From: Oopsacas minuta
Taxonomy: Eukaryota; Animalia; Porifera
DNA length: 64,000 nt
Direction: 5' to 3'
Assembly (NCBI GenBank): GCA_024704765.1
Contig: JAKMXF010000221.1
Coordinates: 186,001-250,000, forward strand
Shown one piece after another: positions 3 to 9,992 of this stretch; within the stretch, counting starts at the first letter, position 1; each line of letters starts with the position of its first letter. The translations under genes and the position numbers were made by a program. The notes below the pieces were generated by a model. It had not been told where the DNA came from, made no database searches, and saw nothing but the letters and a program-made list of their open reading frames with translations.

Positions 3-3000
3 TCTATTCTCTCAAATATTTGTTATTCTGAATGTTCGTTCCTGCAGCAACTCGCTGGTCTTGAAGAATCATTTGCTCATGGATTACAGAAACTCCTCAG
101 GAGTGCTTCTTACACGCTACACTCCAACACTCTCATGCAGTGGTTAGGACAAGATCCTTTCGAAGAGACAGGGTGATCACAATTAAATACTTTAAGCTCA
201 AATGACTGTTTTGAATACCGTTATATTATTTTTAGTACTTTAAAAGAAGCTTGGAATTTAATTGGAGAATGCCTTTCTCTCACTGCTAAGCATCATCTCG
301 AGAAGGTAGCTACGAATATACATGTTACTGGTACAAGAATTATAGAAATAAGAAATATATTAATTGATATTATTCAGGCTTATTTATTGAAACAAACTGT
401 CGCAGAACCTCTCAGTGAGACCAAACAACAGTTAGATGATATTAAGAAGCAAGTATGTTATATATTACTGAACGGATAATTTGTGTTACTTTTCCGTTTC
501 GTTAGAATCTTAAAGAAACAAAGTTTGCATCGACAAAGAAACTAAAGCAACAGTTGAAAACAGTGAGTATAATTGTATAATATATTACTCCTGATGTTAT
601 GCATCTGTCAATCTAGGAAAAATTAAAGTTTGAGGCGATTACTACAGAGTATAGCAAACTGAGAGGACAACTTGATTTCCCAGGTAAATCCATTTTATAT
701 TTGATTACTTGCTAGCTAGAGTGAACACGTTATTTTCTTCACTTCTTTCCAAAGAAAGAGTGGACAGGATGTCATCTAAGAATCCTCAGAAGGTTTGATC
801 TACTATACATATAATTATATTTTATATTGCATCTTTCTTTTTCCCTTTGAATGTGTTAATTGTACGTTTACACGTATTTTATTGCTACATATTCTGGGGA
901 AATTGGGAGAAGGTGACCCTGTTCATTATATTTGAACCGCATTAGCTTGAAGAGCAGATTAATGTTATTGAAGCACAGCTCCAAGATCAAGAACATCTGT
1001 AAGTTTATTATACGCACACATCTGATGTTTACTGTAATAATTATTATATGGATGTTTTGTTAGATGTACAAAATTGAAACAAGAATACATCATAGCGGAA
1101 AGAGGGGCTAATCTCCAACTTGAATATGTTTACAATGTGAGTGGGCTATTTTTGCATAAGATATCATATCTTATCAGTATATGAGTAATATCACAGTATA
1201 AGAGTAATATCAAAGTACATAAGTAATATCATATAAGTAATATCTTTGAAATAGTTATCACATGTAACTCCCAATTACATAAGAGAAATTTGTGATTATA
1301 ATTATTACCACAGCATGTAATCAAATTACTTTACGATTTTTCCCTTTTCAATGTTGTATATATGATAAATCATATAACTATTCTATCGATTTTTAGCTCA
1401 GAATGAATTATACACGAATCCACCCTAAAATAATTTTGACAGTATTCTCAATTTCTCTTATTATATGTATCGTATTATTAATATTTTATCTTTTCTGGTT
1501 TGTTTATTTCGCGAACGAGGTGCGTTACTTGAAGAAGAAGTTGTGGAGGATAAAACAGGGACGTAGCAATTATGAAAATGACACTCTTTTTATCAAATAC
1601 GAATCTGAATATATTAAGAACAGACTCATGTTATTCGTGACTATTCTTGAACCATTATCCTTTCTTCCAACATTCATAGAAATATTAACTCAGGAATTTT
1701 TTATGGATCCTCTGGAGCAAAGAGAAATTCTAATTAAATGGGTGTTAATTTTAAGTCAGAATGTTTGGTTTTCTCTCACATCCATCATCTACTTAACTTC
1801 GATCTACTTACTCAATCTGCTAACATTTTACCAGATTAACCTACTGCAGAACACGAATGATATAACTTTATTAAAACGAAAACTACGACATTTATTAATA
1901 TTTTCAATTATCCTCGTAGTCATGGCTTTTAGTGTAATTGCCTCCATTATCTCACAGTTTATTGCCGTAGTCCTTATTTCATACTATACGGTTACTCTGA
2001 TCAGGAAAGCGAAGTGTCTTTATACCTTGTTGAAGTTCCGTTACAAAGATTCACTCTTGCATCATAATAATATCCCTCTCCAGAGAGCTCAGATGAAGAT
2101 TGCATTCCGTTATAAGTACTTCAATATCCTCTTACTGACTGGCTTCTGTATTTTATTCGTTTCACTTTGGGTGAATTTCTTCACCGCTTTATTATCCGTT
2201 TTCAGATATCCCTCTTTTCATAGATTCATTAAAATACATAGTCCTGAGACCATTAAAGTAATGATTGATCTTATAGAAGTAATTCGCATGCTTAATGTAA
2301 CTATAGATTTTCTAGCTTTTTCAATACTAATACCCACATTGATTGTATTTACTATTATTTTTATATCAAAAAGTTTTAAGAAAACTTATTATTGATTTGC
2401 TGTTTGTTTGGATATTAACTGAATTAAATTATATTAATAGACAATACATGATTCTGAGTGGATTAGAATATCGAAAATTAGGACTTCTCTAGTTGAATTT
2501 TCAAAGTGAGTTCTTAACAATTTGTACTATTTATGAAATATTTATTTATTAACAAAAACAATAGGGTCTATTCAAATACTGGTCCTGTCTACCTTCAATA
2601 TTGTCAGAAACTTGCTCTACGTATGTATGACATAGATGCAGGCAAAGACATTCATGAATTTGTACTGGCTCATGAACAGTTTATTTATTCTCAAAACTCA
2701 GAAACTAATAATTTTGAGGTAATATTATTCTAGAATTCATTTATTATATTATTTATTTCCGTTTGCATAAAATTTGTTCATTTTAGGATTTGAACAGTCA
2801 TCCAACAGGTAAATAATAAATATACACAAATTGGTTAGGTGTTATGTGTATTTATTTCTAATTAAACAGATTGCATTATTAAGAAATCTCCAAAGAATGT
2901 TTCCAGCTCTAATTCTCATCCGCTGACTCATTCTGATAAAAGAGATTTCTCTCCAAAGGAGGACACACCTGGTAATACAATTTCTAAGAAACCACCATCT

Positions 3001-3991
3001 CCTCCAAAAACACTCCCAACACCACCAAAACCTAATATAACGAAGTCTGGCAGGCAAATAACTCATCCCATACAACCTAGTGAGCCTCCAGCCTCTGTAT
3101 TCTCTTCTACTGTATTACCCAAGCCACCATCTCCTGCACCTGCACCTACTCCTGCCCCTCCCCCTTCTCGCATACTACACACATCTACTGTAGACAGTAG
3201 CAAAAGCGATATTCCACCTCCTAACACTACACAGAATGAGACTTGTAGACATAATGCAGATACTGATTCGGTTAAGTCTAAGATAGAGGCTCCTACTCCC
3301 TATCCAGATTTACCTATCTTACACAAAGAGCTAAAAGGAACTGAGTCTAACATTAATGAGAGTTAGTTACTATAATAATTATATTTATCTTAGCATTTAA
3401 TTGCATTATATTCAGTTGTATTGATGCAAGAAAAGTTAATAAAGATGAGTGAAGCTAATGACTACTATAGGATCATTAATGGGAGTCCTGAAGATGAATT
3501 AGAACATTTAGATGAATTGAGACGTAATATTACTAAGAGATTACATCCTGATCAATTTGCAGAACAGCCTGAACTACAACGCAAGTAAAATATCTTTAAT
3601 TCTTTGTTTTAATACTTAAAATATTCATTTATTTATTTATTTATTTATTCATTTATTTATTGTAGAGCAAATAGCAAACTTAGCTATCTAAACACAATAT
3701 TTACAGATGTTCTATCTAAGGAAGAAATCCGTAAGATATATAACATTCTATGTCAGTATCGAAAGGTAACAGAAATATCTATTAAAATTTTGGAATTTTT
3801 ACTACTTTTATTTACAACTGTAGGCATACTCCCAGATCACCTCGCAAGACATGAACTCTCTTAAAGTAGCAATGGAAAAGTTCCAAAAGATTTACAGGTT
3901 CTTCAAGAAGAATGAAGTTCCCGTTCAACTTATCCAAGAGGTAGAAATGGCTCTTAAGCTCCTCAATGCTTGTATTAAGAAAGTCAGGTAA
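3..3991 (+). CDS. F-BAR (NOSTRIN/PSTPIP-like) + proline-rich linker + DnaJ-domain protein, 5'-partial, multi-exon
   Basis: Phase-consistent GT-AG exon chain assembled by hand: 3-172, 236-305, 378-452, 506-562, 617-683, 755-792, 946-998, 1064-1136, 2441-2505, 2565-2718, 2787-2808, 2870-3361, 3416-3584, 3666-3765, 3824-3991. F-BAR-like motifs GTLKEAW, LEYVYNTIHDSEWIRISKI and DIDAGKDIHEFV. J-domain DYYRII...KRLHPDQF...VLSKEEIRKIYN. Confidence 0.75.
1179..1245. repeat. Imperfect intronic minisatellite with core AGTAATATC, 4 copies
   Basis: agtaatatc recurs four times at 13-19 nt spacing. Confidence 0.7.
1403..2395 (+). CDS. Intronless 330-aa protein with about 7 TM helices (GPCR-like topology, no recognisable family motif), nested in the F-BAR gene intron 1137-2440
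   Basis: Long open ORF with seven hydrophobic stretches separated by basic loops. No DRY or NPxxY motif. Confidence 0.7.
   Translation: MNYTRIHPKIILTVFSISLIICIVLLIFYLFWFVYFANEVRYLKKKLWRIKQGRSNYENDTLFIKYESEYIKNRLMLFVTILEPLSFLPTFIEILTQEFFMDPLEQREILIKWVLILSQNVWFSLTSIIYLTSIYLLNLLTFYQINLLQNTNDITLLKRKLRHLLIFSIILVVMAFSVIASIISQFIAVVLISYYTVTLIRKAKCLYTLLKFRYKDSLLHHNNIPLQRAQMKIAFRYKYFNILLLTGFCILFVSLWVNFFTALLSVFRYPSFHRFIKIHSPETIKVMIDLIEVIRMLNVTIDFLAFSILIPTLIVFTIIFISKSFKKTYY
3626..3660. repeat. (ATTT)n intronic microsatellite
   Basis: Run of atttatttattt in intron 3585-3665. Confidence 0.85.
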
Positions 3992-4181
3992 CAATACTAT
4001 TACAGCAACTTGAATACTTGTAGAGTTATTTTTCCATTCAAGACATAGATTTGTGTAATAATTATTACAGATATTTTACAACTGGTATATTATTTTTAAC
4101 TAAAATATACGTATTTGCTTGTATTTTATGTTTGAGCCTTTCTGCGCATCATAATACATATACTATAACCTCAGTTTATAT

Positions 4182-4982
4182 ATGACTACAAAATCAGAGC
4201 AAGTACTAAGCGTAGAGCATGAAGAGGTTATCCCAGATTTAGCCGGAGAACTACTGACTGCTTACAATGCACAAGATGTTGCTATAAAGAACAAGCAACA
4301 GCTGATTAGAAGTACAAATGAAGAGACTGTAAGAGAGACTGTACGGTGTCGTGAGTTAGAGAGTGAGCTCGCTACTATTAACAGGAAAGTTTACTGTGCT
4401 GTAGAGGAGAACAAGGGGTATGAAGCAAAATGTGCTGAGCTATGGGAAGGATTGAATGTAGCATTGAAGAGGAAATTAGATTCAAATCAGTTATTGAGTG
4501 ATATGAAACAAGAAATTTTGGAGAAGAAGAGAAAATTTGAGGATTATACTAAAAAAATGGAAGAGTATGAGAGATGTCTAGAAATTGTTGAAAGAAAGAG
4601 CAGTGAGTATAAAATGTTGGAGGAAGCTAAAATAGAGTTAGAAAATATTACAAACGAGATTCATAGCAAAAATGAGATCAACTTAGATGAGAAAATTGAA
4701 AAGTTGAAAAGTAGAATTTTGGAAGAGGAAAATAAAGAAACAGAGCTGGATGTTAGAAAATCCCAGCTAGATGAAAGGATTGTGGAGATGGAAAGTAAAA
4801 TTGAAAGTATTGAAAGGGAAAAATATATTTATGTAAGAAGAAATCAAGCACAGCTGATTCTTATGCAGAGACAGCTACAAGAGGGTAACCTCAGTTTAGA
4901 GAAGAAGTCGGATCAGCTGAGACAGCTGACTAGACAGAGAAATCAGCTGAGAGGAGGTTACCAGCAGGAAATGAACAGCTGA
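4182..4982 (+). CDS. 266-aa intronless coiled-coil protein of unknown function (weak resemblance to CCDC122-like proteins)
   Basis: E/K-rich heptad pattern along most of the ORF. Confidence 0.7.
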   Translation: MTTKSEQVLSVEHEEVIPDLAGELLTAYNAQDVAIKNKQQLIRSTNEETVRETVRCRELESELATINRKVYCAVEENKGYEAKCAELWEGLNVALKRKLDSNQLLSDMKQEILEKKRKFEDYTKKMEEYERCLEIVERKSSEYKMLEEAKIELENITNEIHSKNEINLDEKIEKLKSRILEEENKETELDVRKSQLDERIVEMESKIESIEREKYIYVRRNQAQLILMQRQLQEGNLSLEKKSDQLRQLTRQRNQLRGGYQQEMNS

Positions 4983-5154: not shown

Positions 5155-6087
5155 ATGGCAACAAGTGAAACAACTAATCCAATGCCTGTATTCACTGAGC
5201 CAGTGAAATGTGTGCTAACAGAGCCTGACATTGACAAGTGGAAAGAATCAACAGGCTACCAGGACCTGATTAGCTTCATACAGTACTTAGGTAAAGCAGT
5301 TGAGAGTAAGAAAATATCAAACGATTGCACTGAATCACCAGGAGTAAAGGGAATAATGACAATATTAGATAAACTCAATTTGTGGGTGAGTGAGATCCCA
5401 CCAGAAGATCAGCCTCAGAGATTCGGGAATAAATCATATCGTGTTTGGCATGCTAGATTAACTGACTCGTCTACAGAGCTAATACAATCTATCCTACCTG
5501 AATCTTTACAGCCTGCTCTAATTGAGTTAAGACCCTACCTCCTAGATTCTTTCGGAAATCCTACTCGGATAGATTACGGTACTGGTCATGAAGCTTCATT
5601 TACAATTTTTGTATTATGTCTAATGAAGCTTGGCGTGTTACTGCAATCTGATGCACAGGCTGTGGTTACTCGTATATTCTACAAATATCTCTCCTTAATG
5701 AGATTGCTACAGAGTACATATCGCATGGAACCAGCTGGATCACAGGGCGTATGGGGCTTAGACGATTTCCAGTTTCTCTCATTCATATGGGGTGCATGGC
5801 AACTGGTGGGACAGTCAGATCTTAAGCCAGAATCCTTCCTGGACAAAGTTATATGCAGAGATATGGCTGATGAATATTTATTCTTCGGTTGCATTGATTC
5901 TATTAACAAGACTAAGAGTGGACCATTCTATGAGCACTCTAACTCATTGTGGGGAATTAGCAGTGTTACTGAGTGGAAAAAGGTCAGCTCAGGGCTACTA
6001 CAGATGTATAAATCAGATGTACTATGCAAATACCCTGTTATTCAACACATCCCATTTGGTACTCTCTTTTCTTTTCAGAAATCGTAA
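5155..6087 (+). CDS. PTPA: Serine/threonine-protein phosphatase 2A activator (PTPA/PPP2R4)
   Basis: Motifs QPQRFGNKSYRVWH, SFGNPTRIDYGTGHE, YRMEPAGSQGVWGLDDFQFL, KYPVIQH. Confidence 0.97.
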   Translation: MATSETTNPMPVFTEPVKCVLTEPDIDKWKESTGYQDLISFIQYLGKAVESKKISNDCTESPGVKGIMTILDKLNLWVSEIPPEDQPQRFGNKSYRVWHARLTDSSTELIQSILPESLQPALIELRPYLLDSFGNPTRIDYGTGHEASFTIFVLCLMKLGVLLQSDAQAVVTRIFYKYLSLMRLLQSTYRMEPAGSQGVWGLDDFQFLSFIWGAWQLVGQSDLKPESFLDKVICRDMADEYLFFGCIDSINKTKSGPFYEHSNSLWGISSVTEWKKVSSGLLQMYKSDVLCKYPVIQHIPFGTLFSFQKS

Positions 6088-6382: not shown

Positions 6383-9300
6383 CTATAATACTACGTCATC
6401 AGGATTCACAAAATCTTCACTTAAGATTTTCTCCCATCCCACTCTATCCGCTAGTTTGACTGTGAAACTAAGTTTATCGTTAAAGAGGGGAGTCTGGAAT
6501 AGTTTAACTGACTGAGACCGACTTTGTCGACTTTTCTTTAGTAACCTCATATAGCTCAATAAGCTCGTCGTTTTCTCCTGTAGATTAGTACAGTTTTGGT
6601 TAGCCCAGTTAAAGTTGTACTTGGGGGTGAGGTTAATGCCTGGTAGAAATGAGTACGTTTTATCAACAGTAATCATCCGTTCATTATCCAAATCATGTGT
6701 AGCCATGCCACTGCTGATAGCTTCAAAGTAATCATTGAATCCTAGCTTCTCTACGTCCAGATGAAAGCTCTCGTCTGAGTCTTCCAAAGGAACAAGGAAT
6801 GAGGGAGAAAATGAATCATTGAAATTGACTTTAGCTAGTCCATCCCAATCATCTATCTCCAATCCGTAATCTTGAAATATGTATTCTCTATCCTGGCTAG
6901 GATATACAAAAATACGTTTAGTATAGAATTCTTCGATTATATCTGTTGCTAATTGAAGGGTAGCATCCAAATCTTGCTTTACCATCCTGATTCTGCCATA
7001 ACCAATAGATGGAGACACTAAATGGAAGTTTCTTCTTCTCTTTTCCATCTTCTTATCTAAAACTGTGTTCAGACTATCCATCTGGTTTCTAATCAGTGAC
7101 ACACTTTCATTATGATTACTCAGATTCGCACTATAACCCAATGGCACTAATATATTGTCAATAAAGTGGTTGTATGTGTTGCCAGGCTGTGATAGAAGTG
7201 TTTTCATAAACTGATTATATAATTGTATCTCCTTCAGCTCCAGGTCATATTCCAACTTTATCAATGCTTGAGATGGATTGATTTGATAATAATAATCCGT
7301 GGCTAAGCCTGGTCCAGAGGTTCTCCTTGCTACGAATGAATTAGTGACAGGAACACGAGCTCTTGGTTTGATGACAACAATATACATAAATAGGTCCCAC
7401 ATATACCGTGCACTTCTACGTATACACGCGAGCAGCACTGTGCTAATAGATAATATAGGCATCAATAGTATGATAAGTATTGCAACGATTAGTTGCAAGG
7501 CTACTCGTATTCCCAGTTTGTATATTGCGAAATAAAACAATGGAAAGACCTTTCCCTTAGGGTTACGATCAGTCCCATCTTCATACTGCCAATCGTATAT
7601 CAGAGTCCTTACCAGGATGATGAGGAGAGAGACGAGTAAGTACCATATCGGATATGTGATTATCAGTACTATCCCCAGTAATATTACGATAATGCATAAC
7701 AATGGGAAGAATATGGAAATGAGGAGAGTCCCAAAACATCCGTAAATCACATACAAATAGAATCTGTTGACAAAACGAGTCATGTTCTTTGGGAGAAATC
7801 CACTATCTGGTTGTCTCTCGAAATTTAACCTCCTCTTCGCGATATTCTCCCACAAAGATCGTATCTTAGTGACGTATGTGCCTCCAAAGCTACTTGCATA
7901 GATATTACCAGTTCTTTGGTCTAGTGAGTATCCATTAGGATATTTATACCAGAGGAAGAGTGCGCTTAAGCTGAATGGGCCTTTTAATACCATTCCTACT
8001 AGCAAGAAAAATAGAAGATTCATGAACCAGGTGTAGAACGAAACGAAATACTTACGCCATCTCCAACCAGGATACTTACTCGTTACTGTCAGTCTTTGCC
8101 ATTTGTCAATGTTATAATTGTTACTTGAAGTACTAATGTAATTTGGAGGAGCATCTAGGATTTGAATATCCGTTTTCCTTTCTCCAGTTTTTCTATTTGT
8201 AATAATATAGTTCTTTGGATTCCAAATCATTCTTTTGAATTCTGTATTAACGGTGGTATAGTTCTCTTTAGAGAGCCGAACTATCAATTGCGGGAGAGTA
8301 TTGTGGAAATCTTCTCCTCGTTTTATAAAGTATTTCCATTCTGGTCCAATAGATTCATCTTCTCCCAACTTATTTAATAAATTTACGAATGTATTTTCAT
8401 TTCTTGTGACCACTTGTCTTGCTGCTAACATTCTTTCTTCTAACCATTGATCACATTTTGATCTGATAGTATTATTCTCTTTCAGTGAATTCCTTATTCT
8501 AGCCAAAGCTGATTCTATCCTCTCTTTCTCGTTCTTTATTTCCTCTTGGATAACACTGAGGCCTCTTAAATACGTTTCAATTACTTTAGATTCTTGTCGA
8601 GAAACAGTAGACCAAGCAGTGCCTGCATTTTGCTTCAAGGCAGTAATGAGACTGGTTAGGTATTCTTCATCAAATGTTCTTTGAATAGTCTCCACTATCT
8701 CACCATCTTCCATTCCCTTCTCTCGATACTCCTTTATGAGTCCCTGAACTCTTTTGGGTGGATAACCAGATTTGATTTCTACTGCTACAGTTCTGAATAT
8801 ATCTTGTTGATTTGTATCTAACCACCAGGAAGTGACTGCCAATAAATTCAATTTATCATCGTTTTCATTTGAATAGACATGTGGACATTTGTTCCTTACG
8901 TCTAATCTCTGGACATCAGTCAATGGGAGACTAACATGAATGTTTTTCGTTTTGAAGAAATTCTCGAATTTATAAGATTCGGATAAATTCTTGAATTTCA
9001 ATCCCAGTGCCTTTAATTGATTCGGATCAGACACCTGTATCCCAGCTGTCAGAGCATTGAACATCTCATTTTCGATATTAAAATTCGGATTACGAATTTG
9101 CCCCCCAATCAGTGAATTGTAGACAAAGTGGAAAGCGTAACCCAAGTTTTCTATTGCATCTCTAATACTCAATCCTTTTCCTATGATGCGATCTCTAGCA
9201 ATAATGAAGCTAAAGTAGTATGCTCTCGCCAGAAAATTCTTGAAATCATTATTGGATGGTTCATTACCCCTTTGAAGTAATTGTGTAAGCTTCCAGACAT

Positions 9301-9992
9301 GTTTAGCTCCCGGGAAGTTCTTTGAGAGGACAGAGAATGTTCCATTTCTTCTGATTTCTTGTAGTTGGTCTTGATTGAGCTTTTTAAGGTTCCCATCCTC
9401 TCCAGTTGCTAATTGTCTGATTTCGTTTGGGTCTGGAGCAATGAAGACGTTCAATTCTGCTGACTTCTCTTCTCCTGTGAATAATCTCTCTTTCAATTGT
9501 GAGCTAGGAGGGATGATAGGCAATATATTGTAGAGCCAAAGTTTCCCGTCTGAGAGATCTTCTATCTGTCACAAACAATTAATATGTATTACTGAAAGTA
9601 TATTTTAACATAACTTGACCTACCTGGCTAAGAACTGGATGAAACTCAGGCAGTGATTTCGCAAAGCTGACCTCCATCCTGAGTGGTTTCACAAGATGAT
9701 CTCCTCCAGCTTCTCTTCCGTGTGACGTCATATCTTTATACTCTGCATGTATATTTGGTTCTGCGATTGCACTCATGAGAGCATCTGGTAGATTGAGGCT
9801 AGGAGGACCAGATACTCTGAACAGCTTATGTTTCTTGGGATGTATTTCATCTTCTTCGGGTACTGTTTCTTCTCTCCTACTTGTCTCATCTTTTATTGTC
9901 CGGATTTCCTTCTCCACGTCTACTGCAGGAGGAGACTTATCTTCCAAATCATCTTCTGTTCTTAACAATTCGTAATCAGTTGAAGCAGACAT
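6383..9992 (-). CDS. Uncharacterised 1183-aa protein with a central multi-TM block; exons 9992-9624 and 9565-6383
   Basis: The two ORFs join in phase 0 across a 58-nt GT-AG intron (9623-9566). Hydrophobic helices flank the motifs KYPGWRWRK and RRTSGPGLATDYYYQI. Confidence 0.8.

Follow-up and report, generated by a model that had tools for sequence, protein, structure and literature searches.

The stretch analysed here, 64,000 nucleotides of the glass sponge Oopsacas minuta (contig JAKMXF010000221.1 of assembly GCA_024704765.1, positions 186,001 to 250,000 of the forward strand; hereafter the window), opens inside a gene whose product combines an all-helical N-terminal domain with motifs that fit FCH/F-BAR, a proline-rich linker, a J-domain and a conserved C-terminal tail. 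We refer to it as the F-BAR-like/J gene. When the three forward frames were read and their open stretches joined at GT..AG sites, 15 exons were obtained at 48-3991 of the plus strand, encoding 575 residues without a stop before the TAA codon at 3989-3991. Positions 3-47 are an intron, with its acceptor at 47/48. In a spliced contig of sequencing run X4 (see below), 147 extra letters are joined to position 48, and thus the start of the gene lies upstream of the window; the loose end of this contig (...KCIYEFF) matches the second upstream exon seen in orthologues from related sponges. According to the orthologue models, two further N-terminal exons of 18 and 25 codons precede the window and read MVE..., then NSFDVVKGRFSNGLEILKCIYEFFL. 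The locus therefore holds one glass-sponge gene of 17 exons, of which the window contains 15, with a product of about 610-630 residues. The gene is transcribed and is under purifying selection.

Four sequencing runs of one sample contain the stretch. Three of them are DNA-like, with colinear contigs, and the fourth, X4, which holds 61% of the words, is taken as cDNA because its contigs are spliced, the library type not being on record. Of the 14 junctions in the window, 13 are either contained in X4 contigs or supported by them. Downstream of the splice onto 48, the first exon in the window (the third of the gene, 48-172, with QLAGLEESFAHGLQKLL... and the invariant loop WLGQDPFEETG) is joined to exon 2 (236-305, TLKEAWNLIGECLSLTAKHHLEK, part of the FCH-like core) at 172/236, exon 2 to exon 3 (378-452) at 305/378, and exon 3 to exon 4 (506-562) at 452/506, each time with GT..AG borders. 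For exon 5 (617-683) and exon 6 (755-792), loose contig ends at 563, 617, 683 and 753 agree with the adjoining exons and support the junctions 562/617 and 683/755; the acceptor at 754/755 is demanded by the frame. Further GT..AG joints connect exon 6 with exon 7 (946-998) at 792/946, exon 7 with exon 8 (1064-1136, ending in ...LQLEYVYN) at 998/1064, exon 8 with exon 9 (2441-2505, TIHDSEWIRISKIRTSLVEFS) at 1136/2441, across a GT..AG intron of 1304 nucleotides (1137-2440), and exon 9 with exon 10 (2565-2718) at 2505/2565. The helical domain ends on exon 10, with ...DIDAGKDIHEFV at 2647-2664. The following micro-exon of only 22 nucleotides (2787-2808) is seen in an X4 contig, which has its letters between 2719 and 2865, and the linker exon (2870-3361, 164 codons) is joined to the first J-domain exon (3416-3584) at 3361/3416. 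The second J-domain exon (3666-3765) is joined at 3765/3824 to the last exon (3824-3991), which encodes the tail of 55 residues and the TAA. The junction 3584/3666 is the sole one without an X4 joint, since the read comparison passed over a simple repeat at 3617-3665. A simple repeat of the (ATTT)n type occupies 3600-3665 of this intron, which splits the J-domain. Extension of the gene past 3988, by way of a GT that overlaps the stop codon, was considered and ruled out: no joint leaves this position, an unspliced contig crosses the stop, and all orthologues end within two residues of the same place.

These results bear on a preliminary description of the DNA, made from the letters of the window alone. 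Its 15 phase-consistent exons are borne out, with GT..AG borders throughout and a stop-free frame of 575 codons, and the two junctions that it proposed to verify with RNA, 1136-2441 and 3361-3416, are both found as spliced joints in X4. However, it had ended the first in-window exon at 142; the true end, given by the X4 joint 171/172 to 235/236, is 172, which adds ...WLGQDPFEETG to the protein.

Orthologues were sought with exon-sized queries. An exhaustive comparison of the linker exon with 1.84 billion representatives gave one relative, P0001, a genomic open reading frame (ORF) of 165 residues from a related sponge with 40% identity, which lies on contig L001. A word search with the first J-domain exon gave five further ORFs, all of them orthologous, on contigs L002-L006. 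A profile of the fused FCH-like exon described below gave no match in a word search, and a scan of the JGI metagenomes with the J exon gave no relative. All of the relatives found are in glass-sponge-like contigs, although queries of exon size do not show absence elsewhere. The exon plan and the neighbours are common to L001-L006. In five syntenic loci from related sponges, complete and stop-free models with GT..AG borders at every intron were obtained, encoding 604-628 residues: 611 residues in 17 exons (L001), 628 residues in 17 exons (L004 and L006), and 607 and 604 residues in 16 exons, with one intron lost (L002 and L003, respectively). A second copy of L004, L005, is truncated. The intron missing from L002 and L003 is the one between window exons 236-305 and 378-452, so that both have a fused exon of 145 nucleotides (L002, 5949-6093; L003, 5984-6128). 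The junction between exons 5 and 6 is shifted: in the window (683/755) the two exons have 67 and 38 nucleotides, whereas in the other five loci (7384/7498 in L001) they have 68 and 34, which makes the protein one residue shorter there than in the window species. The 22-nucleotide micro-exon stands at the identical place in all orthologues. Exons 48-172 and 2441-2505 are 98% and 95% identical to their counterparts in L001, and 34 of the 51 columns of exon 10 are invariant between the two. Because the five related loci give stop-free GT..AG models of the same gene, a chance assembly of exons is excluded.

The same data can be set against the possibility that the model merges two adjacent genes, one for a helical-domain protein and one for a small J-protein, or that it takes in an ORF nested in the 1137-2440 intron. 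Contigs cannot prove that all junctions occur on one molecule, and the joint 3584/3666 is absent from the X4 joints. However, spliced joints flank the linker exon, to the micro-exon on one side and across 3361/3416 on the other, and a single frame runs without a stop through all exons in six loci. Since the frame is continuous and conserved, two separate genes are very unlikely, and we give any merger of this kind almost no credence; the RNA joints and the conservation across six loci instead uphold the single gene in a single frame that had been described before.

The selective constraint differs sharply along the protein. Compared with the window species, the helical N-terminal domain of the orthologues has 78-80% amino acid identity and a ratio of nonsynonymous to synonymous divergence (dN/dS) of 0.07-0.09; the J-domain has 81-82% identity and a dN/dS of 0.04-0.12, and the C-terminal tail, where conservation is highest, 87-89% identity and a dN/dS of about 0.07. 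In contrast, the linker has 29-33% identity and a dN/dS of 0.46-0.62. Synonymous sites are saturated in these comparisons (dS above 1). The sharp regional contrast in dN/dS indicates two folded modules and a disordered spacer that have been kept as a unit in at least four lineages.

The long intron between exons 8 and 9 contains, on the same strand, an ORF of 330 residues with seven predicted helices (1403-2395), which is a separate gene and not part of the F-BAR-like/J protein. An in-frame fusion of this putative seven-transmembrane ORF with its host is ruled out, since the ORF is in a different frame, exon 8, if read on into the intron, meets a stop at 1181, and the intron is spliced at 1136/2441. 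The depth of this joint in X4 is about 740, and that of the unspliced contig over the ORF (1174-2470) is about 120, equal to other introns; thus, expression of the nested ORF in its own right is not demonstrated. X4 also reads C>T at 2078 and A>G at 2268, in one contig only; at both positions the sample's DNA runs match the window, and the differences could represent another allele or RNA editing. The nested ORF has 10 relatives with 43-60% identity, in sponge contigs only, which form a multi-copy family, and it has no Pfam match. Its AlphaFold model shows seven helices (predicted local distance difference test score 68, predicted template modelling score 0.64), and the Foldseek neighbours of this model are nearly all G-protein-coupled receptors, with weak E values of 0.4-1. 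L001, L004 and L006 have the ORF in the same intron, and L006 carries an additional copy upstream (3082-4065). It is not present in the lineage of L002 and L003, where the orthologous intron is about 290 nucleotides long (6817-7105 and 6848-7136, respectively), yet the whole host gene is kept there. The nested gene, present in three lineages and lacking in one, thus shows turnover by presence and absence. With its syntenic copy in L001 it shares only 43% identity, against 80-98% for the host exons.

The neighbourhood of L001 is as in the window: SRP68, the F-BAR-like/J gene, a coiled-coil ORF of about 265 residues, a PTPA-family gene, and a Lips-family gene on the opposite strand. In the window, the coiled-coil ORF is at 4182-4982 (weak DUF745 match, E 5.7e-4), the PTPA-family gene at 5155-6087, and the Lips-family gene, a single exon for 1046 residues, at 6383-9523 of the minus strand (PF25228, E 6.7e-181). 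The order of these three downstream neighbours is kept in all related loci. The window is AT-rich, with about 26-45% GC over its first 12 kb, and the introns are short, with GT..AG borders. Glass sponges have compact genomes with many nested genes and strong microsynteny (PMC10282587), and the locus fits these published features.

The first J-domain exon carries helices I and II, and the codons of the HPD motif are at 3544-3552. A profile of two sequences of this exon matched the J-domain of CbpA in the PDB (2kqx and 3ucs, E 1e-4) and the entry 3lz8 (E 2.5e-3), and more weakly DNAJB12, DNAJC3 and DNAJA1; the alignment is in register from DYY through HPD, and the HPD aligns with that of CbpA and DnaJ. 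In the six loci the HPD is invariant, and so are the basic residues of helix II, in an LRRNITKRL-type sequence before the HPD. Helices III and IV are encoded by the second J-domain exon (...TDVLSKEEIRKIYN...), whose borders are conserved in all loci. Here DVLSKEEIRKIYN aligns in register with EVLSDEQRRAEYD of CbpA at the place expected past the HPD, and the motif VLS...R..Y is retained (EVLSD...R..YD in CbpA); shuffling gave modest support for this alignment, with p values of 0.002 (window), 0.004 (L004) and 0.03 (L001). We also built a hidden Markov model (HMM) of the six spliced J-domains and ran it against E. coli DnaJ, CbpA and DjlA together with 9000 shuffled decoys. CbpA came first with 17.7 bits and DnaJ second with 10.6 bits, the best decoy reaching 9.6 bits.

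Some results call for caution about the J-domain. The first J exon of L001 gave the only Pfam match among the single exons of the gene, to the DnaJ family (PF00226), with E 0.0055 and 17.2 bits over positions 1-39 of the 63 of the model, below the gathering score of 27.8, the exon of the window itself gave no Pfam row in the single-exon scan, and the second J exon alone had no PDB match. The Pfam score, which refers to an exon piece, falls short of the cut-off because the intron splits the domain and the remainder is on the next exon. On this evidence from sequence and profiles, we take the C-terminal module as a J-domain, canonical in its HPD, as proposed in the preliminary description. A J-like fold that has the HPD and no longer cooperates with Hsp70, leaving the real function to the tail, for example as an interaction domain, would account for the divergence of the second half, for a post-HPD loop that exceeds that of E. 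coli DnaJ by 5 residues, and for a tail that is the best-conserved part and matches nothing known. Nevertheless, the HPD and the basic residues of helix II have remained invariant while synonymous sites became saturated, the first half is in register with bona fide J-domains, and VLS...R..Y of helices III and IV is kept, and we therefore regard such a loss of cooperation as improbable. The tail of 55 residues is helical and conserved, and it gave neither a Pfam family nor a look-alike in the ESM Atlas.

The linker is about 185-200 residues long, with 12-19% proline and 21-25% serine and threonine, and is disordered. Its exon 2870-3361 agrees with the PxxP-rich linker of about 165 residues in the preliminary description, whose quoted peptides and HPD are also all present. 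In each orthologue the linker contains several PxxP motifs together with one or more of the type [RK]xxPxxP, and a P.P.LPILH block directly before the J-domain is common to all; the conserved PTPYPDLPILHKE block of the window is at 3292-3330. At position 3100, in the linker exon, the DNA runs X2 and X3 disagree with X1 from the same sample (T or C), and the site is probably heterozygous. When the six orthologous linkers were scanned with regular expressions, none had a clathrin box or a DLL/DLF, DPF/W, FxDxF, WxxF or NPF motif. Because the linker is without such clathrin and AP-2 motifs, clathrin uncoating gets no support from the sequence, and SH3-domain partners would be a more natural guess.

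The N-terminal all-helical domain has about 285 residues, spread over 12 exons of 11-51 residues. Its stretches free of proline and glycine, 21-98 residues long, are separated by invariant glycine or proline positions, and 32 columns are invariantly basic. The invariant DPF belongs to a loop of this domain, outside the linker. The blocks LEESFAHGLQKLL, G[ST]L..AW..I..E......H and D..D..EF, the second of which reads GTLKEAW..I..E......H, resemble the core of FCH and the end of the F-BAR domain in proteins of the PACSIN and NOSTRIN types, a likeness that we take as a lead and not as a test. In a feature search of the ESM Atlas with the fused exon of L002 (5950-6093, 48 residues), FCH (PF00611) was the commonest family, with 16 of 30 named matches and a score of 0.91, and the remaining family-named matches were nearly all from the BAR clan (BAR_4, BAR_3, IMD).

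Several observations weigh against an F-BAR domain. No FCH match in Pfam and no F-BAR chain in the PDB was obtained from exon, fused-exon or read-through pieces of 21-72 residues, among them the fused exon of 48 residues from L002 and a stop-free read-through of 72 residues. The Atlas result for FCH is weak by the calibration of the tool, with a recognition value of 2125 (below 2300) and 160 shared features (below 170), and the same search with exon 1 gave no look-alike. Furthermore, the domain has an isoelectric point of 5.6-6.7 and is not net basic, whereas many lipid-binding F-BAR domains are. A generic coiled-coil or helical dimerisation domain in front of a real J-domain, that is, an ordinary class C J-protein with no link to membrane curvature, would agree with the blank single-exon searches, with Atlas values under the confidence marks and with a slightly acidic domain. 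However, F-BAR subfamilies share little sequence, and because they are so divergent and pieces of 20-50 residues are too short for HMMER, the blank Pfam and PDB searches carry little weight. The sole family-level signal is for FCH and others of the BAR clan and not for unrelated coiled coils, and the length of about 285 residues, the positions of the conserved breaks and, as a lead, the motif pattern fit F-BAR. We consider the generic domain unlikely, and the N-terminal domain probably belongs to the F-BAR/BAR superfamily. Thus, of the F-BAR-like domain in the preliminary description, the helical N-terminal domain of about 285 residues stands, and its identity as F-BAR is not established.

It is rather likely that this one expressed gene encodes a protein that targets Hsc70 locally. 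The N-terminal domain is predicted to dimerise and to place the protein on a membrane, probably a curved one, or on a cortical or F-BAR-type scaffold. There the linker would bring in SH3-domain partners, and the J-domain would turn on the ATPase of cytosolic Hsc70, which may then remodel or take apart a protein assembly. By analogy, the protein is best read as a class C J-protein that may follow the logic of auxilin/GAK and RME-8 with a different targeting module. In a more specific and tentative form of this proposal, to which we give somewhat less than even weight, an F-BAR dimer that senses curvature is fused to the J-domain, so that Hsc70 would be recruited by membrane shape and not by a coat motif; this would be an independent auxilin-like solution, so far in Hexactinellida only. 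The role in coat disassembly suggested in the preliminary description finds no backing in a linker without clathrin-box, DPF/W, FxDxF and NPF motifs and in an N-terminal domain with the acidic isoelectric point given above, and an uncoating function is speculative. The tissue of Hexactinellida is largely syncytial.

J-domain proteins determine where Hsp70 acts. Those at membranes are few (auxilin/GAK, RME-8, Sec63 and DjlA), and each has a different targeting device. If the proposal is true, a J-domain on a domain of the BAR superfamily would mean that membrane shape, or an F-BAR scaffold, also counts among the signals that recruit Hsc70, and the protein would be a natural test case for the disassembly of F-BAR or endocytic assemblies by Hsc70. 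The practical weight is limited, as the gene is seemingly confined to glass sponges and both the F-BAR fold and the function are putative. The locus also illustrates that compact glass-sponge genomes conceal conserved multi-exon genes that are overlooked by ORF-based tracks.

Among known systems, auxilin/GAK (DNAJC6 and DNAJC26) similarly have, in this order, a module that targets a membrane or lattice, which in the sponge protein is putative, a long disordered linker and a J-domain with HPD near the C-terminus, and the switching on of Hsc70 at a defined membrane site would be a further likeness. Unlike them, the sponge protein has no PTEN-type Pfam match on any exon and no clathrin-box, DLL, DPF or FxDxF motif detected in its linker, it has an extra tail of 55 residues after the J-domain, and it does not belong to that family. 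RME-8 (DNAJC13) is, as proposed for the sponge protein, a J-protein that is set on membranes by its own lipid-binding domain and has Hsc70 as its partner on endosomal assemblies. However, it has about 2200 residues, a PH-like domain that binds phosphatidylinositol 3-phosphate and an internal J-domain; the sponge protein is without a PH-like module, and no sequence relation between the two was seen. Bacterial CbpA and DnaJ provide the closest sequence matches to the first J exon (DYY to HPD) and to the VLS...R..Y block, although the resemblance is restricted to the J-domain, and the G/F and C-terminal substrate-binding domains are not shared. Full-text literature searches for F-BAR with a J-domain or DnaJ domain found no such fusion described, in line with the statement of the preliminary description that no characterised protein with F-BAR and J-domain was known. 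With the F-BAR proteins (PACSIN/syndapin, NOSTRIN, CIP4/FBP17/TOCA and FCHSD), the putative F-BAR domain of the sponge protein shares its N-terminal position, its length of about 285 residues, its all-helical nature and, by eye, the FCH core and the D..D..EF end. Whereas these known proteins end in SH3, HR1 or muHD domains and bind proline-rich partners, the sponge protein is inverted: it has a proline-rich region of its own and a J-domain at its end.

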